Assembly: GCA_950097015.1 (NCBI GenBank)
Contig: CATNEN010000032.1
Coordinates: 1,426,001 to 1,490,000, forward strand
Reading direction: 5' to 3'
DNA from: Macrostomum hystrix
Taxonomy: Eukaryota; Animalia; Platyhelminthes
DNA: 64,000 bases
Shown here one piece after another: positions 33,105 through 48,975 of this stretch. Each line of letters opens with the position of its first letter. Position 1 is the first letter of the stretch. The notes under the pieces were generated by a model, which ran no database searches, was not told the DNA's origin, and worked only from the letters and a program-made list of their open reading frames with translations. The position numbers were made by a program, and so were the translations under genes.

Positions 33105-33203
33105 TGTGTCTTCCTAAAGGACACGAATTGGCGAGTCGGGAATTGAGAATCGAGAATCGAACCCCGACCTTAAAGTCTTGAGTCTAACGTTCTTAGCACT
33201 AGA
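33105..33203 (-). mobile_element. Degenerate third copy of the tRNA/CORE SINE (head only)
   Basis: Minus strand GACTCAAGACTTTAAGGTCGGGGTTCGATTC...GTGTCCTTTAGGAAGACAC matches copies 1 and 2. Confidence 0.65.
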
Positions 33204-33375
33204 CAACAACCCCCTTGACGACAATCCTTGAAAATAACGCCCTTGACAACAACAACATTGACAACAACCACCTTGACAACAGCCGCCTTGACAACAACCT
33301 CCTTGACAACAACTCTCTCGACAACAAACCCTTTGACAAAACCCCCTTGACAATAATCCCCTTGACAACAACCCA
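33200..33375. repeat. ~18-bp degenerate repeat (CCTTGACAACAAC core)
   Basis: Read directly; gives N/D-rich and V/C-rich spurious ORFs. Confidence 0.85.
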
Positions 33376-34069
33376 CTCAAATGTGTCAATTCGAAGAAGT
33401 AGAGCGGGCATGATTTAGCTTTCAGCTTTTTAACTTCTCAGGTTTTTAGCTTTGAGTACGAAGGCTATTATGAGATAGACAATTCTGTTTAGTAAAATAG
33501 AATAAAAAACGATTGACAAGCTTCATTGGATACTTGGTTGGTTGTTGTTGTAGTTGAAGACGATAGGGAGGAAGACTGGATCGAGACAATTAAAAAATAG
33601 AGACAGAAAGTAGAATGACCGATGTAGCGTCAGAGAATTTGATCAAGAAGAGAGAGGGAGAAATACAGAAGCTGAGTTAATATGGTGCTGAGTCGTAGCA
33701 CCTCAGAATGACCAGAATTTGACCTTGAAGAGAGACATGTGCAGTGAAGGAAGCGATAGTGGATGGTTTGAGGGTAGAGCGCCAATGCAGACTGGGAAAC
33801 ACTAGAGAGCTCGATGTAGAGAGCCTTTATCCAACTAATGGATACCTCTAGTGCCTCTACCAAGGTAAACACAACTGCGATTGGGGCACGGCTGTCTAGA
33901 GAGTGAGTGGGAAATGGATTTCTGCACAAAACACGAAAGGCTCTGCAAGCCGAATGCGCCCAAAAAGCAGCGTGCCGCTCTTGGTCAGGTAGTAGGGGCC
34001 TTGTTTGACCGCGTGGGACCCATTGAGAAAGAGCTGTGGTCAGTCACTGGCAGTTTTCCAGGTCAATCG

Positions 34070-36768
34070 ATGTTCAAGTTGCATCTGAAGTCCACTCTGA
34101 TCTACCTGATGCTGGCCTGCTTGGCTGTATCAGGCTGGACCCCGGATGCTTCACCGGACGAGTTGGTTGCCAACGCATTGGGTCTGAAGTCTGCCGGCGG
34201 TTACAACCCGGATGTCAGGCCGCCGCCTGATAATGGAACTGCCAATTTGGTGCGCGTGCATACCAACCTCAACAGTCTAGTGGCTGTAGTGAGTGATGGG
34301 CCAATACATTCGCTCTACTGGTCGACTGTTCACTCTACTAGTCGACTGTTCACTCTACTGGTCGACTGTTCACTCTACTGGTCGACTGTTCACTCTACTG
34401 GTCGACTGTTCACTCTACTAGTCGACTGTTCACTCTACTGGTCGACTATTCACACTTCTGGTCGGCTGTTCACTCTACTGATCGACTATTCACACTTCTG
34501 ATCGACTATTAACTCTACTGATTGACTATTCACACTTCTGATCGACTATTAACTCTACTGATTGAGTATTCACACTTCTGATCGACTAATAACTCTACTG
34601 ATGATTTCTCATGTTTCCGATTGTCAAGTTACATTTATCACTGATGTTATCTCTTCATCTATTTTCAGAACTCGGCATCGCAAGAGATAAGCCTGCTCAT
34701 GTGGCTGACGCTTGTAAGTTTAACAATATGAATGATTAGTTCCATCCTGCAGTTCACAACTTGTGAAGCAATTAGGAAAATTTCCTGTTTCAGTCCTGGA
34801 CTGATAGACGGCTGTCCTGGCGAGGTCGTTTCAATGCCACTCTGGACGACGAGCTGGCGGTATATTTCCCCTCTAAATTGCTATGGCAACCAGATGTGTT
34901 CTACAATGATCTGTGAGTGCGGTCTGGTCCCTTGAAGATTGTTTTCCGGGGATAATAAACAGGTGTTGGAATATTTTGCGTCCATAATAGCCTCAGGATG
35001 AATATACTCACTCAAGATTGACGTCTCGCGAAAATTACTCTCTCACTTTAGTCGTGAATTACGCAACTCACTCTATGCATGGGAGGAGACTATGAATCAC
35101 TGTGACGGGGGTTGATGCTTGCACCAGAGAGAGTACTAAACTGCTTGACTATTTCGTTGCGATGGAGAGAGAATTTTTCGCCTTTTGACTGATGCTGAGT
35201 AATAATAATAATAATAATGATAATTGCAGGAGGGCTGCGGGCAGTGGCACACAATTTAGTGACATCAAACTTAGGTACCGTGGTGCGAGAGGCAAACGCG
35301 ATAACCGCTCTGCCACCGACCCCCTCCTGCTGAGTATATATATTCTGAGGCTATTATGGACACAAAATATCCCAACACCTGTTTATAAAATTGAGCTCAC
35401 TCATTTCAATCCACTGCGAACCTCACAGCCTGCATCTACAGCAGGTGTCAGTGAGCAACGCGGCAGCTCACGTTACGAGTAGCAACACCGGATCTGTGAT
35501 GACCTCCACACAGTACCTGACCACCAGCAAGTGCCCAATGAACATGTTCGCCTTCCCGTACGATCGGCAGTGCTGCACTGTGTCCATCTCATCAGCTATT
35601 TACCCGAAGCGCATTCTCTCGCTAAACGTCGGCGCGTTCCTTGAGAACGACTCAATTACGAAATACTTGTCCCGCAGCAACGAGTTCTGCATCACAAGCG
35701 CCGAAATACGAAAGTCTCCAGATGAGTACTTTGACATCCTACAGTTTGTCATCAACTTCAGGGTGATTTTTTAGATTTTGGTAGTTTTTTGTTGCATATT
35801 TAGTTGATTTGAGATTTCTTCATGGCCGCTGCAGTTGCTTGAACCACAGCCAGCAAGGACGCTATCAATATGCCTAAAATGCGACCAAAACACATGGCAC
35901 CTTTTCACATTTCTACGACTTTCTCCTGGTTGGACAATCTAACCAATATGCCCAACAATGAATACACACGTACAGTTACAGTTCTTGGGATTAAACCATC
36001 ATAGGGGATAATCACAAGAAAAGTTTTGAGAACCTTGACTATTGACATAAAAATGCAGTCAAATGGACATTTTCAGAGACGACCCATATTCTACGTGGTG
36101 AACCTGATCCTGCCCAGCCTCCTGCTGCTCGCCATCTCCTCTCTGACCTTCCGACTGCCGCCTGAGTGCGGCGAGCGAGTCTCCTTCAGCATCACCATCG
36201 TGCTGTCCATGTGCGTGTTCCTGCAGATGGTGAATGAGTACACGCCTACGCAGGGCGAGTCGATTCCTCTTCTCAGTGAGTTGGCTCAGGTGTTTGAAGT
36301 CAGAGTTCAAAGTAAGGTTCGTTTGCAGCAAGTCTGTCTCTCCACCCAACAGCCTGCTACTGCACCCTAGCTGTGGTGATGACCATGACTATTGTGCTGG
36401 GCAATGCGTTCGTGCTGCATTGCCACCACCGCCGTCGGGCTGGCAGCCCAGGTACTCCCCCGGGTCGCCTGGTCCGCGCTCTGTTTCTCAACCCCTTCGT
36501 TGCTAGGCCAAGACGTCATCCAATGAAAGCGGAGGCAGCGACACAACAGCAACTGCCGGAGGAGCCGGAGGCTCTAGCCAGCCAGCCACAGACCGCCTTG
36601 TCAACCGCAGCCGCTCACAACTGCCTTAGCAACAACGAATGGGGCGCCGTCATCTCAGCGGCCGACACCTGCCTTTTTGCAATGTACTTTAGCGTCACTG
36701 TTTCCATAGTGATTGTTCTGATTGTGGTGGGATTCGTCACCTCCAGACAAGAGTGTATCAATGACTAG
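34070..36768 (+). CDS. Cys-loop ligand-gated ion channel subunit A (nAChR-like, non-alpha), 443 aa
   Basis: Exons 34070-34288, 34669-34713, 34794-34912, 35429-35762, 36077-36275, 36353-36768. Signal peptide, RP, WTDRRLSW, WQPD, Cys-loop CPMNMFAFPYDRQCC, M1 RRPIFYVVNLILP, GER-M2, four TMs. Confidence 0.9.
34310..34605. repeat. 20-bp minisatellite (GTCGACTGTTCACTCTACTG) in intron 1 of channel A
   Basis: Read directly. Confidence 0.92.
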
Positions 36769-37134
36769 TAAACTAGCTAAACAAGTAATCAACTATAAGT
36801 AAAGTAAAGACAGTTTAGCTTTGAGTTATGTGAGAATGCCTTAAGCAATTACTAAGAACGGTTTTAGCTATGCCAAAGCACAATCGATACAAACCATGAA
36901 GACGGAAAACAAATACAGTTAAGATAAATATGCTCACTGATTTACTGAATGCATGCGAGAACCGGACCGGGAGACGGATAGAGTTGAATTGTAACACAAA
37001 TAAGGAATTATTTATCGTCCATTGTGTTGCCTGCTTTGCTATAGAGGAATTCACACACACACAACAAGTGTTTAAAACTGCTTGTCTAAAAGCAGCCATG
37101 CTGAAGCAGGCTTCAATTGACTGCAGCTGCCACA

Positions 37135-39637
37135 ATGTCCATGCGCTTCATCACAGCTGCAGCTGCTGTCTTTCTGGCCAGCCTCGCCTGTGCCAGGGCC
37201 CGTGCCGCCGCACCCGAGGAGATCTACCGGAGTCTGGGACTCCACAGCGGGGGCGACTATGTGAGGGCCCTGAGACCGCCACCTGACAGAGACTCCGCCA
37301 ATGCGGTTGGAGTGAGCTTCTTACTGAGCAAGCTCATCAAACTGGTGAATTTTCCCCCCGACCAAGCTCGATTTTCTCTCAACTTATTGATTTCCAGTTG
37401 TTCTTTGATTTATATAAATTCATCAGCGTTCTGTATTAACCAAATACCTGCAGGACTCCGCAATGCAAGAGATTACAATACAAACACTCCTTTCGATTGT
37501 GAGTCATTGCCTTTTTTATACAGCATCGAATCGATCATAGACTATCGTCAACCTGACAACCTTACAATATCATTAAACTTATTGCAATTGCCAACAATTG
37601 AAGTACATGTCATTTGCCAGGAATGGACGGACAGTCGGCTGGCCTGGCACGGCCGCTTCAATAGCAGCCTGGACAATGTGACGCACATTTATTTGCCTGC
37701 TGAAAATATTTGGCTTCCCGATGTCACCTTCTCAATGGTGTAAGCTACTCTCTGTAAAGCAGGACTCTATACTCAGTTAAATATAAGCACTGCATTGCAG
37801 GAAAGACTCCAAGAAAACCGCCACAGACAATTTTGTGGTGCGACTAAACAGCAACGGCCGAGTCTTCGCCTCGATGGAGCTGCTCACGACCTCCAGGTGC
37901 GGCATGAACATGCGCAACTTTCCGTACGATACGCAGACTTGTGTTCAGGTTGTTGGGTCGATTGCTCACACCACGGATGCCATTGTGCTGGATGACTTGA
38001 GCAATTCATCGGACGGCATGCTAACTAATGCCCTGCAGAAGAACAATGAGTTCTGCATTTTTGGAGTTCGCACCGAAAAGAAAACCTTGTTCGACGTCGA
38101 CATAGTTTTAATAGTTTTGGAGCTTCAGGTAAGACAGCAGTTTGATCTCCATGGTTTATGGCTATATTCAGGATTCTTAGAGATGAAGCAATGCTCGAAA
38201 CCTTTTGATAAAGTGAATTCGAGCACAATGAAATTCGACACTTCTGCCCGACACATCATTGTCGCTAAATTTTTCCACATGCCACTCAGCGAAAATCCAC
38301 CTTCTACCTGGTGAACCTGATCCTGCCCAGCCTCCTGCTGCTCGCCATCTCCTCCCTGACCTTCCGACTGCCGCCTGAGTGCGGCGAGCGGATTTCTTTC
38401 AGTGTCACCATCGTGCTGTCCATGTGGGTGTTCCTGCAGCTCACAGGCAACTACATCCCTGCTCAGAGTGACTCAGTGCCTTTAATCAGTTGAGTCCTAT
38501 TTGCTTGCCGACTTTTTATAGTACTGAACGTTTTCGTATCAGAAAATCTATGAACCGCTGGAAAATGATCTCCAATCGCAGCATATTACTACAGCTTGGC
38601 GGTTTTCATGACAATGGCGAACGTGCTGGGCAATGTCTTCGTATTGAGCTGCAACTTCAAGCAGCCAGACGACACGCCGGTGGAAAATCGACTAGTTCGG
38701 CAGCTCTTCCTTAGTCGCTGCGTTGCCAGGAAGGGGCCTCTTGGCGTAGGCGATTCGTGCACTGCTAGGACAGCTGTGATGGTTTGAAAATAATTAATTG
38801 TTAATTAATTATGTTGTCGGTTTAAAGAAGCCGGTGCGACTTGGGTATAAATGGTCCTCATGAATGCTGTTTGCACGTCGAGCACCCAAGCAAGCCTTCC
38901 CAAGCGCAAATCAAAAGTTTTCGCCCTTTACAATGAACTAACTTTCAAAGCCGTCCCAGTCGGCATCGTCGAGATATTCACTGATTCTTGTCGAAGACCC
39001 TCGGTGACAAGGACAACTAAAATATAGCAGTATAAGCCTCTACGGCGAATCCATATTGGTTCAATAATATAAAAGTCATTAGTATTATCAATGCAACATA
39101 ATCAACAGCAATAGCCGACATGATTACATTATGAAATTTTGTGAGCACAAAAATTAGGCATAAATTGGCGAATTTTGCCACCAGATAGCGAGACAACGAG
39201 AATCATCGAATATGTTGACGATGCCGATGTTTTGTGATCATGGAGGTTGTTTTATTGAATAGAGCAGAAAACTTTATTGCGATTCGTAAAATATTTTAGA
39301 AGATACAACAAAGAACAATTTGGGTATTTGAAGACCCCGTGGTCTCTGTACTGTTGAAGCTAATAAAAAGCAAGTTGAATAATTATCAACTCAAAAATCA
39401 TGCCCTCCTAAGCCAGCTGAGCAGCCGTCGGCGACATCAGTCCGAGCAGCGATTCAGAGTAAGGCAGTTCAACACGAGCCTGTCGACTCACAAAATGAGT
39501 GGCGCACCGTGGTGGCTTCTGCTGACAGGTACTTCTTCGCAGCTCAGCTGGGCCTGTGCTCAGCAATCCTGCTGGCTCTGCTCATCACCGAAGCTGTCAG
39601 CAGGAGAACCGATTGTATCGGCTTGGACTACCTGTGA
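37135..39637 (+). CDS. Cys-loop channel subunit B (nAChR-like, non-alpha), ~429 aa
   Basis: Exons 37135-37344, 37454-37498, 37621-37739, 37801-38128, 38290-38488, 38582-~38745, ~39413-39637. Cys-loop CGMNMRNFPYDTQTC; last junction least certain. Confidence 0.88.
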
Positions 39638-40210
39638 GCTCGGACCAGTAGATTCTGAAGACAAGAACCAAGCTGCTTCTCGGGAGAGACCGAAGCTAAT
39701 TGCCTTCGGCAGTGTTTTTTAAAATAAGTTAAACAAAAGGTTAGAAAGACGAAGAGTTAATTTTTAGGGCCACCGTAGTAAAATATTTTGCAATAACAGA
39801 AGTTGCAAGAAAAGCAGTAACTATTTAAATCAATATTTTTTCTTGACAAATTTTATTTCTATAACCTTCTTGTTCTTTAGAACTTTTAATTAGTATGTCT
39901 GATAGTACGAGTATATTATTTTTTTTGCTTTTCGAAAATGATTTCAATAAAAATACTTAAGTAAGCACCCGTTGGTGGCCTGTGGTTCATAACATTAATT
40001 ATAAATTTTCGACTTCAACAGAATTCAACCTGTGCTACTCCATTTTTACGTGGTTAGTGCTTTTCTAAGAAACGACAAGAGCGTACCAAGAACTTGTACT
40101 TTAGTAATTGATAATTCCGTTGCCGAGGTGGTGTGCAAAAAGAACTGAAGAAGTTATTTTGTTAAGTAGCTTAGATGACAGACTTGCTTTATTTTCCAGC
40201 GCACATCGCA

Positions 40211-42543
40211 TCACAGAGTTCGCCCTGAGATGCAGCCTTTTCCTGTCGTAGCGACCTGCAGCACGCAGATAGCAATCAGAAGTATCGCAGAGGTGCCGGT
40301 GAAGATGGCGAAGAAACAGCGGTCAGCGGATTCGACGCAAATTTTCCATTCGTTTTGGCCAACTGGGCTGGCTTGAAGCATCTTCTTTGAGGCGGCGGGC
40401 TTCGCTACTTCGCATGGCGAATCTGTCGATGCTTCAGTGGCCTGAAAGTTGTACATTAGCAGTACCGGTAGGACAGAATTAGCAGTCTTGGAGTTAATAG
40501 CATTAGCAGTTAACGGATGCATTAGAAACATCAGTACCGAAGGCACTAGGTAACAGCAGGTAATAACTAGGTAATATCGTCGAGATATTCACTGATTCTT
40601 GTCGGAGACCCTTGGTGACAAAGACAAATAGCATTACTCTGTGTAAGCCCCTATGGCGAATCCATATTGGTTCAATAATGAAGAACTTAACAATTTAATA
40701 AATCCTAAATAGTCAACTGTCGTGGTCGGACTAGTGTACCTGCACCAACTCTCCCGGCATGTGTATAGTCGGGGGGGTCAGTGCACCCAGCCAGCCCGGC
40801 TTAGTACTCGTAAATTCTCGCACCTGAAAGGGCCACCTCCCCATGCTATCTGATTTTGACGATTTTGACACGTGTTAATATGGCCGATTGTGCTCACCGT
40901 TTGAGAACTTGTCACGGCATCGCTAGCAGCCTCAAAAACTATTGTTCTCCGCCTGGCAACAAATCGGTTGAGAAACAGCAGCCGAATCAACCGATTCTTC
41001 ACCCGGTCCTCGCCACCAACATGTCGAAAGTGCCAGCTGGTCACAAAAACGTTACCAACAACATTGGCCATCGTCATGACAACCGCCAGGCTGTAGTAGT
41101 ATGCTGCGAATGTATGCATTGTAGATTAAACTAAACAAGCTAAAATATCCATAAATATATATATATATAAATATAAAATAACCATACTAATTCACAACAA
41201 GCTCACTGATCAGCGGGATGGAGTCACTCTGAGCAGGGATGTAGTTGCCTGTGAGCTGCAGGAACACGCACATGGACAGCACGATGGTGACACTGAAAGA
41301 AACCCGCTCACCGCACTCAGGCGGCAGTCGAAAAATCAGGGAGGAGATGGCGAGCAGCAGGAGGCTGGGCAGGATCAGGTTTACCAGGTAGAAGGTCGTC
41401 CTCCGCTGAAATCGATAAAACCAACCCTACTCAAGATAATTCAAGAAGAGATTGTGGATGCTTGCCTAACTTCTACTTTCTTTTCTGAAGTCTATAATTA
41501 AAAGAACGCAAGCTTTCCGTTATGAACGATGACAGAAAATGGCTCCTGTCTTACCCGAATGACAATCTCTAAAATCACCAAGTCGTAGTACACGTCCAAT
41601 CTGGCTGTGGCGCTCACATTATCGATGCAAAACTCGTTGTTCTGCTTCATAAATGTAATCAACGAGTTAGAATTTTTAATTGAGTCAATCTGTAGCTTCA
41701 TCGTGTCCGTCTCGTGCATGGTTGACGACACAGACTGCTGGCAAGTCTGGGTGTCAAACGGAAACATCTCCATCTGCATGATGCACTTTGAAGTTGCAAT
41801 GATCTCCACCGCATGATATACTACGCCGTTCGGGTGGACCTTCACAATTGACGTTTCTTCAAGAGTTTTTTGAAATTGCAAGCTGCAAGTTAATAAAAAG
41901 CTTTTTTGAAGAGCACCTAGCGTTTTGTATGCGTGCTATTTATCGAAAATGCAAACAAAACCCCTCACAGCTCATGGAATCCCACATCGGGTCGCCAGAC
42001 AAGATTGTCAGGCAAGAATATTGCGCTCAAATTGTCGAACACTGAACCGAAGCGACCCAGCCAGGCAAGACGACTGTCGATCCAGTACTGGGGTTGCACC
42101 GTGTGGATTTTGAAGGCTTTATTTAATATTGAGGTCCAGTGGGTTATTCTTTTTCGAAAGGCCTGCTTACCACATTAAACCACATGTGCACAGTGATTTC
42201 TTGTGCTGCGGAGTCCTGAAATTGATCAAATCAGAGAGAGCTGGGGTAAAGATAAGTATGCGCCTCATGGCGAAGTCTAATTCAAAGTAACAGCGCTCAC
42301 CACTTTTACGATATCGTTAATATTGAAATAGACGCTAATGGTATTGGCGCTGCCATTGTCTGGAGGCGGTCTTACAACTCTTCTGTAGCTGCTAGTCTCC
42401 ACTTCAAGAGCTTCGATCAGGGCCTGCTCAGACTGAGTCCCATTCGTCGCAGAATGCACCGCCATGGTGCAGCAAGCAGCCATGATTGTGGCGGCGCAAA
42501 TGAGGCTCTGGGGCTTCATTCTAGACTTCATTTCGCAGGACAT
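40211..42543 (-). CDS. Cys-loop channel subunit C (nAChR-like, non-alpha), ~456 aa
   Basis: Exons 42543-42301, 42215-42171, 42087-41969, 41882-41555, 41405-41207, 41103-40898, 40441-40211. Internal exon sizes 45/119/328/199 match gene B. Cys-loop CIMQMEMFPFDTQTC. Confidence 0.9.
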
Positions 42544-44243
42544 CTGAAACTGAGCTCTGAATTGAGAAGCGGTTGCAGCTCGCTGCAGTCACCAGGATTT
42601 TAAATAGTGCGCCCGAAAAGCATTTCCAATATTTGTCCAGAAGCCCACGTGTCCATTAGTCTGGCGAAATCGTATAATTAATTGACCAGAGCGAGCAAGC
42701 AAAAATGTGAGTGCTTCTTTTGGACGAGCGAATGTCAGTTTGTATCTGAAAACGCCAGCTGCAAATAGTCTATCGATAAAATGCATCTAGATGAGTATGT
42801 GATCAGAGTAGTGTGTATCAGAAAAAAGTCGAGATGTGGTGTGGTGTGTTTCAACCGCGAAATGAAATATCTGCCTAGCTGTGCTTGCCAGCGCTTGTCT
42901 AAAACTGTTATTCTCGCATTTTCTAGCACGTTGATGCTGCTGGTAAACTGGATGCTTGGGAAACCAAACGAACTATACGAGTAAACCAGTGGAAGCTTCA
43001 CACGAGAGAAATACTTAAAGGCAGTAACTGAACAGTATTTGCGCTCGTGAGACGAGAATTTGATAACTCTCTGAGGCTTTCCTGAAATATGAGCTGATTA
43101 TTGAATGGTTTCGACTCAACATTCAACTAAACTTGGACTAAAATATATGAAATTGAATATCTAAGGAAATTCAAACAAGCCAAAGAGTTCAAGAATGAAC
43201 TCATTCCGAAAGAATCCTGAACCACACTACGAGAGCAAAATACTCGTTTCTAGGCGGCTCGGCAAAGCTTAATCTTTACCATGTAGCTTTTCTAGTAGGG
43301 TTATTTGAGAGCTTTCATTTTCTCGACCCTTTCTCCCCTCCGTTCCTGCCTTCTTCGACGACATCTCTATCTATCACTATCTATTTGCAGGGGGCCCGGG
43401 GCACTTTTCGCACAAGCGACAAAGCGGCACGCCCCCAGACCGGCGAACTAGGCGCTTAGCGCCGCCTTCCCTGAGCAGGCACCACACACAGCAGCACAGA
43501 CCAGCCGGGGAGGGCAGGAGGCACCCAGAATAGGCAGCAGTGCCCTCCACCCCAGCCCGGGGCGGAAGGCTGATATGAAATCTTCGACAACATAGTCTAT
43601 GGCCAAAAAATATGATAAACAGTCTATGGCCATACAACTTCAACCAAATATTTTGTCGATGTACGTACTTCCGAGCGAAAAACAAGCTTGACAAAGATCA
43701 GAACTCAATGATAATGGGTCGGGGCACAAGTGTGATGATTCAGCAACGCCTAGATCACCAGTGCGCGTAGCACACTATGGCTGAATCCATTTTGAGTTGC
43801 AAAATAAAAAGAGTTGTAAAATTGGACAGACTAAAAGCAGTGTACCAGCATCCTGAATTATCATATTTGCGCTGACTTTCTAGTACTATCAACGAGTGTT
43901 TGCCATTTGAGCAGTTTATTTGAGACCAGAGGAACCTGAATCTCACTGTAGTGTTTGCTTATTTAGTAAAAATATACGATCGCCTCGTAATGGCTGAATA
44001 CCTAGCAAATCTGCTCACTAGCTCAGGTTCCTGAGGACGCGCCCCCCAGGTTCATGTGACTTCATCGCGGGCTCAAATGAGGAGGACGAGATAACTCTTG
44101 ACCAGTTCACGGGAAAGGCATTAAAACGGAGGAAGTCTTCCTCCAAAATGTAAAAACCTTCGGATAATTTGTTTTTTGCCCATGGCAGGTTTATCAAAGT
44201 ATATTTAGTTCTCTCATTAAAGCACATTATAGCCATAACTGTG

Positions 44244-47200
44244 CTAAAACTCGTTCGTGCAGGTGCGCACGGAGGTCGCCTCGAAGCAGAGGACGGTAAT
44301 CGAAATGGCAAAGGTGGCAGTTATAAGCAGGACAATCAGGCACTTGTGCGCTGACGCAGCCGCCAAAGCCCATTCGTTGCAGCTCGGGTCGTCTGTCTCC
44401 GGCTTCGAATCCTTCGAGTTTGTCTCAGTTGAATTGGTATACTGACTGGGGGTTCCTGAACATTGAGATGGACAATTTTTGAACGTTTAAGGACTTTTTA
44501 GCAAAATCGCGGTGCTAACTCACTGCTTGTCTCGACATTTTGCAGCTTCCACTGACGAACCGATTAAGAAAGAGCACCCGGATGAGTCCAGCGTTCACTC
44601 GGCTGAAGCCACAACGCTGTCGAAAGTGGCAGTTAAGCACAAAGACATTGCCGATCAGGCTTGTCACCGTCAGAGCTGCAACGATGCTGCAGTAGCGGGC
44701 TGCAAAATATCATCTCGTCTGTACTGATAGTAGAGTACTCAATTTTTCAATGTAAAACAAAAATTATTTAATTTTAATTTCACCAGACTCATGTTACTCA
44801 TGTGGTAATTGTTCGACAAGAAGAATATTCTACAGGGGTTTTTTGGTTGAGCCACATTAGCGAACTCACTAAGCAGGGGCATGGACTCGCTCTGAGATGG
44901 GATGTAGTTGCCAGCTAGCTGAAGGAACACGCACATGGACAGCACGATGGTCATGCTCAGTGAGATGCGCTCGCCGCACTCTGGTGGTAGACAGAAGGCC
45001 AGGGAGGAGATGGCGAGCAGCAGGAGGCTGGGCAGGATCAGGTTCACCAGGTAGAAGGTCGACCGGCGCTGCATTGAATGTTGGAGTCACTTGTTTTGAC
45101 TATCACGTATCACATAGATTGTAATTTCTCCCTGAAATGTGTGAACTTTACATCCTTTCTATCAATGATTGGAATTCACTCTGAACTGTTAATCGGATAT
45201 CCCAAAACCCTTGGATAGCCAGGGTGATGACCTCGGTTTAGCTTAGGGGCGCTGTTGTGTAGTTCTGCACATTGTTCTCATTGTTCTAAGAACTTGGATG
45301 CCAATTTGGCCAAGAGGTTTCCTGTCAACCACCTAAGCTTGGTATGAAAAACCAGTCAAAGCCTTGAAGTCGCTGAACCAACCGAGAACGCAACAACTAG
45401 CCTGACGAATGGAAATTCGCCATCTGAGCCCTCTTCGCTGAACACAGCTTGCAGGCAGAAATCGCTGCTGAAGCTGATGTTGAAGTCGGCCTTGCTTGCT
45501 GGTGTCATGCGGACAGTCGTCGCTGCGGCGTTCTGCACCATCGAAGAAACTTTGACTCTGCAGCGCTGCGCATCGTACGGAAATGTACGCATGTCTAAGT
45601 GACATTTGAACCGAATCACGAACTCCTGGTTGCGCTGCACTTCGCCTAAGCTGCTAACGTTCAGCAGCAGACGATCGTCTTAGACGCGCTGGATGCTAAG
45701 GCTACAAAGTTTGAAAGATTATCCGTTGAAGCACACATCGCACTAAGGATAAACCAAAGAGTGCGAACCAAAAGTTCACATCCGCGTTGAGGCCCTATTC
45801 ATTTATTAAGGTTGTGACTGACCCTAAGGGCAAAAGTACCAAATTCGCTCAAGGGTCAAGTGCAATGCAGTCCTAGCTGGCTGCTTGTTGGCTAACCAAT
45901 GACCCGCCCTTATTAAGAGCGTCATTCGTTTTAGCAGGAAGGTAGCACTGATTGCATCTTGGACAGAAGCCTTAATAAAAGGAGGCTGTAGCTTTGTGGT
46001 TAGAGCGTCGGACTCACAACTTTAAGGTCGGTGGTTCGATTCCTGACTCCACTAAAATAATTTGCGTCATTTAGCAAGACGATTAACTCTGCATTGCTTC
46101 AGTTCACCCAGCTGTTAAATGGGTACCAGCATTAGCTGGGGTAATTGAGGGTGGGTGTGGCGTCCCCCGTCCATGGACTGAACACAAGACTGCATTCCTT
46201 TTCGATGCAGCAGTGAAGAGGTCTCTCTGCTTGTCCTGCCCTCTGAGCCAATGGAGTAGAATATAAAATAGATATGTTGACATCGCGGGTGTTTTGCACG
46301 CATCATCTCTACTTTACAAAAAACAGGGATGACCAAGACCTGAAAAAACCGGTGTGAATGAAACAACACTCTGTAGATTGCTCACCAGTCAAGAAAGGAC
46401 ACATCCGGCTGCCAGAGAAGTTCGCCAGGCACAAACAAGCTTTCCATGCTGTCAAAGCTGGAGTTGAACCGGCCTCGCCAAGCCAGACGACTGTCTGACC
46501 AGCGCTGGAAAGGTTTCGAAACTCAACAAGTTTTCAACGATCTTCATTTTACATCGATAAACAAAGAAATGATTTGGTCTTACCAGCGACAGCCACACTT
46601 GCAGAGATATATCCTGCGCGGCGGAATCCTGCGAATTATTGATGCGATGGCCCAAACTCTTTGGATGGAAATTTTATGATAAAAGTGCACTACATAAACC
46701 GATACTTTGAACGCAGTCTGATATTTCAAGAGCCAACATGCGGGACAGAAGTCTTGTACACTTCCGTCCGGGACTCCACAGTGCCCACAGCTGTCAAGTT
46801 TGCAAATATTGACCCGAAGAAGCCTATAAGAAGAGAAACAAGTTTCACTGTGAGTCAAAGAATGACTCTAACATGTAACTTCATTCCTGTTACCAAAACA
46901 CTCCGAAGCAAAACAAAGGCGTTTTAAGTACGTTTAGTCTCGTCTCATCCAAAGTGTTTGTCTGAAGGACACAATAATGGTTGACTTGCTATAAACTTTT
47001 ATCGGTGAAAAGTTCCAAGTAGGATGGTCCTAGTGTAGAATACACTGAAACTATTGTATAATTTTGTGCGTGTCATTTGGAACTCGGAAGGTTTCAGAGA
47101 ATGTTTCAGTATCCCTTTCAAAGCCAAAAATCAATCTGAAATAATAATTTATAACTTGAAAATTACACCGAGTAGCTCTCAAATCGTGAGTTAACATGTT

Positions 47201-47910
47201 TACTCGTATTCTAGATTGACGCGGCTAACTGCCAGAAGAAGCACACTTGTCGTGCCGATGAAGGACAATGCACGCATAATTGATGTGCACGGGCTGGGAC
47301 CGTGACGAGGGTGCTTTCCAGCTGCGCGCCGCCTTCAACTTCCACCGGCCGTCACGCCAAATACGTCACCAACCAGGCGCGCCCTCTATCATCGGGCCAA
47401 GTCTAGCCCTCCAAGTGTGACCCTGTGTCAGCGCCGTGTCAAGCTTGCGCCGTGTCAATCCGCCGGAGTCCTACTGCCCGGAGCAGCTGCAGGAGGTTTT
47501 GCTGTACACACCATAGTGCCTTCTCCGGCAGGGTCAGGCCTGGACTTGGAGGTTCGCCGACTATGATTAAAACGTGTATTATGGCGATGTCCCCTTTCTT
47601 GACCACTTTGTGGCCGTTGGACTTTCTATTAACTAGTATTGTAATGTAATACAAGTAGCGACTGTTTCAGACTCCTCACCACAGCAACGAAGTTATTCAA
47701 CACCGGCAGCACCCAGATGGTGTTCGCCGTGCCATTTACCGGGCTGGGTCTCACCGCCGCGACATAGCCGCCGCCGTCGCCTCTGCCGCTCAACAGACCC
47801 AGCTGAGTCATCAGGGCCTCCTCCGATGATGGAGTCAAGTCCGTCAGGGCTGCTGACGGTTCCAGCAAACTGACAAGAGTCATAAGAGCTAAACTAGGAA
47901 ATGACAGCAT
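44244..47910 (-). pseudogene. Cys-loop channel subunit D with one in-frame TAA (45682-45680); otherwise intact
   Basis: Exons 47910-47680, 46628-46584, 46504-46386, 45701-45383, 45068-44870, 44699-44524, ~44441-44244. Exon 4 reads LSIQRV*DDRLL; Cys-loop CHLDMRTFPYDAQRC. Confidence 0.78.
45981..46180 (+). mobile_element. tRNA-derived CORE-like SINE, copy 2 (intron 3 of channel D)
   Basis: TAGCTTTGTGGTTAGAGC...GGTTCGATTCC, then TTTAGCAAGACGATTAACTCTGCATTGC...GGGTGTGGCGTCCCCC as in copy 1. Confidence 0.8.
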
Positions 47911-48443
47911 GACTCCGGCTGACTCCGGCAAGGTCGCTGAAGCGCTTTGCACAAATACACAAATCATTATCGCGTTTTATAAAAACGAGACGGAAAGGCA
48001 CAGATCATGCTGATTAGCCAATGGTAGCGGAGGTTGCGTCGTGGATGAAAGAGAGCTGAGAGCATAAGAACGCCTACCAAATTTGGTGTTTCTGGGGCCG
48101 AAGCGAGCAAACATTTACCTAAATCCGCTCTATAATTACTCTATAGTTTATGCTCTGCTCTTTTTCCGAGTGAGTTCTGCGCTGAACTTCTCATAATTTA
48201 TCTCATAAACTCAAACTCATAATCATAGGTCTTCCGAGAGTTTGTTAGGTTTCTTGAATGCGTCGAGCTCGGTTGGCTGAAGCCTCATGTAAAAATTAAT
48301 TGGACAGAAAATGAACACACATTTGACGCTCTATGCAATGGTATTAACAAACATACCAATACTTTATAATTAGGCTTTATAGTGTTACACTGTCTGTTAA
48401 GCTAAGGTCATTGAGAGCGTCAGTATTGATTGCGTCTCGCTTC

Positions 48444-48975
48444 TTAGACGCTGACGCACTTCAGTAGCTCGGACAGGTTGCCGCCGCACTTGTTCACCAG
48501 GCAAGTGACGATCGCGGTGACGTCGCTGCTGCCCATTCCGCAGCTGTTGGCAAGGGCGTTCAGAGCGCAGGCAAGGCTGGGAAGTCCGGAACTGAGCAGG
48601 CACTTCCAGTCGACCGACAGTGTGGGCAAAGTCTCGTGCAGCAGGTCATCAAGAACTTCGTACTTTTGCTCCGTGGAGTAGCTGCTGGCGGCGGCGACAG
48701 CCAGCAGGCAGGCGAGAAGAGCGAACCTCAGCTACAAAAAGCCAAAGAGGTGCCGGGGTTGAGGTACAGGGTTCGGAAATTTTCTGAGAAGTACATATTA
48801 TGTTTGTTTGAATCCTCTCACTGACACCCTGATGATTGGCATTGTTTATTGGGTATAGAAGGTGACGTGGCTAAGGACAATTGTCCAGAATTGCACGGGT
48901 CCGAACACTCACTAATTAACTCGTTCACTAGGGCGCAGTGAGAATGACATACGGTATGCAGTCGTCACTTACCAT
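48444..48975 (-). CDS. Small secreted six-cysteine protein, 96 aa, unknown family
   Basis: ATG-only coding exon 48975-48973 with perfect donor ATG|GTAAGT; acceptor at 48733-48732; exon 48731-48444. MLRFALLACLLAVAAA signal peptide, mature C-x10-C-x8-C-x12-C-x4-C-x9-C. Confidence 0.8.

Follow-up and report, generated by a model that had tools for sequence, protein, structure and literature searches.

Four very divergent cation-type Cys-loop receptor subunit genes in a tail-to-tail cluster of the flatworm Macrostomum hystrix

Introduction

What gates a Cys-loop channel whose subunits lack the residues that bind the classical transmitters, and to which branch of the superfamily do such subunits belong? 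The question is raised by four paralogous, intron-containing genes, here called A to D, which span positions 34070-47910 of a 64,000-nt stretch of DNA from Macrostomum hystrix. This stretch is referred to as the window; all coordinates are positions within it. A preliminary description of the locus had considered the genes to be derived from nicotinic acetylcholine receptors (nAChRs) and to be candidates for a chemosensory receptor array.

We favor, with a probability of about 60%, the reading that the four genes form a tail-to-tail cluster which codes for very divergent Cys-loop channel subunits, recovered from Macrostomum only and gated in a non-classical manner. As judged from the sequence, the cluster is characterized by probable gene conversion of the exon which codes for the membrane segments M1 and M2, by a cation-type pore, and by a principal face that is unable to form the aromatic box for acetylcholine (ACh) or serotonin (5-HT). 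The ligand-gated ion channels of Macrostomum lignano have been inventoried, the cationic ones being lumped as "nAChR-like" (PMC6881066). In the literature, we found no paper on this Macrostomum family in particular.

Four subunit genes with a cation-type pore

The stop-free frames on both strands of region 34000-48200 include four sets of Cys-loop receptor pieces, with A and B on the forward strand and C and D on the reverse strand (A> B> <C <D). The Pfam domains Neur_chan_LBD (PF02931) and Neur_chan_memb (PF02932) were detected above the curated cut-offs in all four genes, for the pieces of the ligand-binding domain (LBD) as well as for those covering M1-M3. The sole exception is a 46-aa piece of gene A (34776-34913), whose 20.6 bits fall short of the cut-off (26). 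Each gene codes for a signal peptide, an extracellular domain, the four segments M1-M4, and a short intracellular loop. The Cys-loop is intact in A-D (C-x13-C with FP[FY]D; C.M.M..FP[FY]D.Q.C), and the alignments of the genes show that the gating hallmarks are kept (WxPD, the pre-M1 Arg, the M1 Pro, Leu 9', and the M2-M3 Pro). Frames, Pfam matches, and gene models thus agree on four Cys-loop receptor genes, two on each strand, as had been described.

The M2 entry, for which a shared G-E-R had been reported, reads PPECGER in all four genes. The pore-facing residues are Glu -1', Ser 2', Thr 6', Leu 9', Val 13', and Gln 16'. The Glu at -1', without the Pro-Ala-Arg anion motif, is found in every one of the genes and represents the cation-selective signature.

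A predicted structure was available for a database relative from M. lignano, P0151. Its AlphaFold2 (AF2) model (pLDDT 85.7) shows the beta-sandwich plus M1-M4. The structural comparisons given below refer to this relative and not to the spliced models of the window genes, which were used for alignment, trees, and codon counts.

Homogenization of the pore exon and divergence of the binding loops

Exon 5 has a length of 199 nt and covers pre-M1, M1, M2, and the start of the M2-M3 loop. It is located at 36077-36275 (+) in gene A, 38290-38488 (+) in gene B, 41207-41405 (-) in gene C, and 44870-45068 (-) in gene D. When aligned at the DNA level, the four copies agree at a mean of 86% per column, and their core hardly varies even at third codon positions; the intron sequences flanking exon 5 are unrelated among the four genes. 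According to the repeat finder, this exon is the only DNA-level repeat that links all four genes (79-91%). The same codon is used at identical residues with a frequency of 0.70-0.88 in exon 5 versus 0.17-0.67 in the other exons. In M1, all four window genes read AISSL, where the M. lignano counterparts have AISTV or AISTL. Outside exon 5, the protein identity among A-D is 22-50% (22-34% in the Cys-loop exon). The near-identity of exon 5 at synonymous sites indicates gene conversion, and the sequence pattern points to concerted evolution that is limited to the pore exon.

Reverse-strand open reading frames (ORFs) that overlap exon 5 (with the repeated MPVSCRNTHMDSTMV...) were considered as genes and rejected, being shadows of the conserved exon.

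The binding loops behave differently from the pore exon. Among the paralogues, segment identity is as low as approximately 0.10-0.25 in loops E, B, F, and C, while the M1-M2 exon reaches 0.81. The same four loops are 39-85% conserved when each gene is compared to its counterpart in M. lignano. Because these loops are paralogue-specific yet conserved between species to this extent, their sequences fit specialized pockets under selection rather than free drift.

Binding-site residues and the expected mode of gating

In loop B, the FGSW of nAChRs is replaced by ISSA (A), VGSI (B), VSST (C), and VSSM (D). The position of the Trp, which is the seventh residue after the second Cys of the Cys-loop, is thus occupied by Ala, Ile, Thr, and Met, respectively. 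Loop C has neither the Cys-Cys nor the Tyr pair, and its sequences are unrelated among A-D; by our count, it is about 6 residues shorter than in alpha7. The loop D Trp is present in A (MWLTL), C (MWFNV), and D (VWLSL), while gene B has a Leu at this position (TLLSI). The preliminary description had already noted the loss of the loop B Trp and of the loop C Cys-Cys, the short loop C that is different in each gene, and the missing loop D Trp of gene B, and our gene models bear it out on all of these. Identity to nAChRs is as low as 22-25%, and the family differs from them by the absence of the loop B Trp and of the loop C Cys-Cys or Tyr pair. In 5-HT3A, the loop B Trp binds serotonin. The family is distinguished from 5-HT3A by the lack of this residue, by its shorter loop C, and by an extra Cys pair (see below).

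If the genes encode non-classically gated channels, their products would assemble into cation-permeable pentamers, probably with one another because their M1-M2 segments are matched. As the interface pockets would be devoid of the aromatic box, gating is predicted to depend on an agent different from acetylcholine and serotonin. A pocket of its own would be supplied by each paralogue, pocket diversity thereby arising from the paralogues.

The residue pattern in itself is compatible with another explanation, namely that the genes code for accessory subunits of the non-alpha type, which provide structural or complementary faces while a conventional alpha-type subunit contributes the agonist site and the channel is gated by a classical transmitter. 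The muscle nAChR subunits beta1, gamma, delta, and epsilon also lack the loop B Trp and the loop C Cys-Cys and keep the loop D Trp. The loss in A-D is thus shared with the muscle non-alpha subunits, and the loop D Trp is retained in A, C, and D. In addition, the best sequence matches among nAChRs are non-alpha subunits (beta2, Torpedo beta, and beta4), and the top match obtained by Foldseek is a muscle nAChR chain. However, identity to any nAChR does not exceed the values given above, and the family forms a clade of its own without an alpha-type member. It is absent outside Macrostomum although the partner nAChRs are conserved. Furthermore, both faces of the pocket are paralogue-specific, and the matched M1-M2 suggests that the paralogues assemble with one another. 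On balance, we consider a role as accessory subunits unlikely and prefer the reading of non-classical gating.

Two additional Cys residues were observed in A-D (region 35680-45460), one at the start of beta9 ([NSH][DE]FC, "NEFC") and one located 3-8 residues before the C-terminus. Both are also kept across the family members of M. lignano, even in the distant P0151 group. From their positions in the sequence, it is possible that they tether the extracellular domain to M4.

Taxonomic distribution of the family

To collect relatives, a profile of the four Cys-loop (LBD) exons was run exhaustively with HMMER against 1.84 billion representative proteins, a library which is clustered at 50% identity and in which closer copies could be hidden. 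This search returned 2 matches below 1e-30 and 34 below 1e-10. The strong matches are exclusively UniProt entries from M. lignano, in several of which two or three tandem units have been fused into one predicted protein. The next matches (~1e-19 to 1e-15) come from various animals, namely nematodes, bivalves, fish, and a hemichordate. Among the ca. 160 proteins that were fetched, the motifs NEFC, PPECGER, RPPPDNG, and LSMCVFLQ occur only in M. lignano proteins. In that species, the family has at least 10 units, with counterparts of gene A (69% identity to P0001:585-969) and of gene D (57% identity to P0003:178-620). On the basis of these sequence comparisons, the family is known so far from Macrostomum flatworms only.

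Placement within the cationic branch

In maximum likelihood trees, the family is recovered as one clade with a support of 97-100, consisting of a core group plus the P0151 group. This clade is found inside the cationic and not the anionic branch (98-100 in the Shimodaira-Hasegawa-like approximate likelihood ratio test, SH-aLRT). In the larger tree, it is part of a polytomy with nAChR-like, 5-HT3-like, and other cationic groups. In the reduced tree, it joins fish 5-HT3A-like proteins weakly (SH-aLRT 73.6), a grouping that is not significant. The family is not nested among the nAChR-like rows. A constrained grouping with these rows lowers the log-likelihood by 8.1 units, and the approximately unbiased (AU) test does not reject it (p-AU 0.119; 35 rows, LG+G4). 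The row labels of the trees were verified against the source names.

Comparisons to solved structures distribute the similarity over several receptor types. The exon covering M1-M3 is best matched by alpha7 (7.6e-16), followed by 5-HT3A (5.7e-13). For the Cys-loop exon, GABA rho1 (1.7e-6) is a better match than any nAChR (4e-3), evidence of extensive drift in the binding domain. A full-length family profile, built from eight M. lignano units, has its best score with 5-HT3A (199.7 bits), followed by nAChR beta2 (188.9 bits) and alpha7 (169.7 bits). With the P0151 model, Foldseek matches nAChR chains (alpha7, muscle) and 5-HT3A chains equally well. In a non-redundant structural search with the same model, alpha7 ranks first (Z 29.4), followed by muscle nAChR (29.0) and 5-HT3A (28.3); lower ranks are taken by Alpo4 (25.4), ZAC (23.4-25.4), CRT1 (22.0), and CRB1 (22.0).

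At the level of motifs, the family shares with vertebrate 5-HT3A and fish 5-HT3A-like proteins the start of M2 (GERVSF.IT), the S..H[TE] of loop B, and the cationic pore. With alpha7, it has SDS.PLI of the M2-M3 loop in common, and the pre-M4 motif EW..V...DR is shared with nAChR subunits.

The derivation from nAChRs proposed in the preliminary description is not demonstrated by these data: the profile favors 5-HT3A and the tree places the family weakly with fish 5-HT3A-like proteins, while a clade with the nAChR-like rows is not rejected (p-AU 0.119). The phylogeny supports the cationic branch, without a well-supported position next to either nAChR-like or 5-HT3-like rows. What stands is a lineage-specific expansion of the cation type without the ACh box on the principal face. 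Based on sequence comparison, the family consists of Cys-loop subunits from the cation-selective branch, with an unsettled assignment to nAChR, 5-HT3, or ZAC.

With respect to ZAC, the genes might code for ion- or proton-gated or constitutively active channels that need no organic agonist. Like ZAC, the family represents an atypical cationic Cys-loop channel without the classical transmitter box, and vertebrate ZACN is the nearest cluster by the features of a protein language model (0.95, a lead only). The weak leaning of the family to the 5-HT3 side of the cationic branch is also in line with this option. ZAC structures, however, rank low in the structural search, with an identity of 19-23%, and different organic ligands would more readily account for the divergence of loops B, C, and F among the paralogues. 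We regard a ZAC-like channel as very improbable and maintain the reading that the pockets would bind non-classical ligands.

Comparison to chemotactile and orphan receptors

According to PMC10338036, which cites van Giesen 2020, Kang 2023, and Allard 2023, the chemotactile receptors of cephalopods are tandem, lineage-specific genes which have lost the ACh box. The Macrostomum genes have the same properties (tandem, lineage-specific, cationic Cys-loop genes without the ACh aromatic box) and might, by analogy, code for receptors on external sensory cells which are gated by environmental small molecules, having arisen convergently with those of cephalopods. This is in accordance with the tandem and lineage-restricted expansion, the loss of the canonical transmitter box, and the constant pore that is combined with paralogue-specific binding loops (10-25% identity). 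The number of family units in M. lignano (at least 10) also agrees with it. Moreover, orphan nAChR-like expansions for which non-transmitter ligands have been proposed are known (PMC10338036, PMC6896357).

Against this, there is no special likeness to CRT1 and CRB1. Identity is 16-22%, and with a Z of 22.0, compared to 29.4 for alpha7 and 25.4 for Alpo4, these two are no closer than other cationic receptors. Chemotactile receptors were also not among the best 60 matches of the family profile to solved structures. The family is small when compared to true chemoreceptor repertoires, and its loops show moderate conservation between species instead of rapid divergence. Expression and ligands have been established for the chemotactile receptors, whereas the family in the window is known from genes only. 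Altogether, a chemosensory array appears quite improbable to us.

The analogy to cephalopods that had been drawn for this locus therefore holds with respect to the residues that have been lost and fails with respect to closer kinship, since CRT1 and CRB1 are ranked below alpha7, 5-HT3A, Alpo4, and ZAC. Descent from the cephalopod chemotactile clade is contradicted by the restriction of the family to Macrostomum and by the Z of CRT1/CRB1, which is below those of the receptors just named (a comparison of structures and not a tree of receptor sequences). The likeness is at most convergent.

Divergent nAChR-like genes have undergone tandem, lineage-specific expansion in molluscs and annelids (PMC6896357). 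For orphans such as Alpo4, ligand screens have been unsuccessful, and a comparison to the chemotactile receptors has been drawn (PMC10338036). Alpo4 and other lophotrochozoan orphans resemble the Macrostomum family in being orphan cationic subunits without the Cys-Cys tip, which are lineage-restricted and often arranged in tandem (PMC10338036, PMC6896357). Alpo4 is different in that it keeps aromatic residues (PMC10338036) which the family lacks; identity is 20%. Compared to the lophotrochozoan orphan expansions, the window genes are intron-rich and not retroposed.

Integrity of the genes

Gene D has a single defect, which the preliminary description had not noticed, an in-frame TAA at 45680-45682 (-) that corresponds to codon 139. 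Its exon 4 starts at 45701, after the acceptor ttgtag, and reads C-LSIQRV-TAA-DDRLLLNV... The M. lignano counterpart of this exon reads S-LSLQRVSGDRVLLNL... and has a Ser (...LQRVSGDR...) at the position of the stop. The tblastn alignment runs straight through the stop codon. Because there is just this one in-frame TAA, we read gene D as a null allele, an error in the assembly, or a pseudogene of very recent origin, and from its sequence the last of these is probable. Alternatively, gene D could use a downstream AG that is in phase (exon start at 45653 or 45650). The stop would then be spliced out as part of a stretch of 16-17 codons, at the cost of a beta strand (as read by eye).

The stop codon in gene D raises the question of whether the entire expansion is decaying, with genes that are no longer functional and drift toward pseudogenes. 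We find this scarcely tenable. In A, B, and C, the frames are complete, the splice sites are canonical, and no gating hallmark is missing. In addition, the identity of A and D to the respective M. lignano proteins is 57-69% and is higher in the transmembrane domain than in the LBD, a signature of purifying selection.

Gene models and cluster layout

Exon borders were set only by GT-AG sites, phase, comparison of the paralogues, and M. lignano proteins. GT-AG is found at every intron, and the models are in frame apart from the stop codon in gene D. The last intron of B, C, and D is located in the poorly conserved intracellular loop, and its ends are a best guess.

Gene A (34070-36768, +) is intact, without any internal stop, and codes for 443 aa in 6 exons (34070-34288, 34669-34713, 34794-34912, 35429-35762, 36077-36275, and 36353-36768). 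The acceptor of exon 4 at 35429 is backed by the above-mentioned similarity to P0001:585-969. Gene B (37135-39637, +) is intact and codes for 424 aa in 7 exons (37135-37344, 37454-37498, 37621-37739, 37801-38128, 38290-38488, 38582-38775, and 39458-39637). Gene C (42543-40211, -) is intact as well and codes for 456 aa in 7 exons (42543-42301, 42215-42171, 42087-41969, 41882-41555, 41405-41207, 41103-40898, and 40441-40211). Gene D (47910-44244, -) has 7 exons (47910-47680, 46628-46584, 46504-46386, 45701-45383, 45068-44870, 44699-44524, and 44441-44244). The tail-to-tail neighbors B and C are each other's closest kin (49% identity). The profile of the Cys-loop exon recovered exactly four copies in the 64-kb window, all of them from A-D, and a fifth family member in the window was thus rejected.

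The common exon architecture that had been described was found in all four genes, with an exon 2 of 45 nt, an exon 3 of 119 nt, and an exon 5 of 199 nt in the same phases. The 45-nt micro-exon encodes strand beta2 and the loop D position, and it matches nAChR exon 3 in size. When each first intron was scanned for AG...GT, exactly one homologous open 45-nt exon was obtained per gene: 34669-34713 (+; NSASQEISLLMWLTL) in A, 37454-37498 (+; DSAMQEITIQTLLSI) in B, 42171-42215 (-; DSAAQEITVHMWFNV) in C, and 46584-46628 (-; DSAAQDISLQVWLSL) in D. Most M. lignano gene predictions omit the micro-exon, while P0001:162-584, P0155, and P0151 hold it partly or fully.

Several repeats are associated with the cluster. 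Just upstream of gene A, at 33202-33374, a 15/30-nt repeat (GACAACAACC[AC]CCTT) is present in ~6-12 copies and is open in several frames. A tandem array of a 20-nt unit (34308-34600; 14.6 copies, 85% matches) takes up a large part of the first intron of gene A, directly upstream of the micro-exon. Intron 3 of gene A contains a 56-nt inverted repeat (arms 34955-35010 and 35331-35386, 91% complementary, 320 nt apart), which looks like a MITE-like (miniature inverted-repeat transposable element) insertion. A 142-nt direct repeat (80%) is shared by the last introns of gene B (38965-39106) and gene C (40576-40717). As B and C are on opposite strands, this is a dispersed repeat and not part of the duplication.

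Upstream of gene D, a small Cys-rich ORF (48444-48686, -) is 57% identical to a part of M. lignano P0003. This part lies ahead of the D-like unit of that protein, indicating that local synteny is kept.

Implications

Several observations weigh against the reading that we prefer. Three of the four genes keep the loop D Trp, which is in keeping with subunits that contribute the complementary face of a conventional site. In M. lignano, the core family is represented by UniProt gene predictions only, with no transcript-based models from NCBI, which makes low or restricted expression possible. The homogeneity of exon 5 could reflect constraint at the nucleotide level. Finally, the references in the trees are thinly sampled, with few named rows and none of the true sequences of human 5-HT3A, ZAC, the chemotactile receptors, alpha7, and Alpo.

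The label "nAChR-derived" is to be corrected to "unplaced within the cationic branch". The tandem expansion of divergent nAChR-like genes, known in lophotrochozoans, is extended to Macrostomorpha, a result that is descriptive as it stands. There is little reason to expect that a clade of cationic Cys-loop channels private to a free-living flatworm was independently turned into a small receptor battery for environmental or conspecific chemicals, with a uniform pore due to conversion and an own pocket for each paralogue; if true, this would be a second, convergent instance of the "taste by touch" solution of cephalopods. If the genes are functional, a branch private to flatworms would be added to the orphan cationic Cys-loop receptors with non-classical ligands. 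The combination of a constant, homogenized pore exon with four different binding pockets would represent a natural experiment. Since transgenesis is established in M. lignano, this family is within reach of knock-outs, reporters, and oocyte screens.

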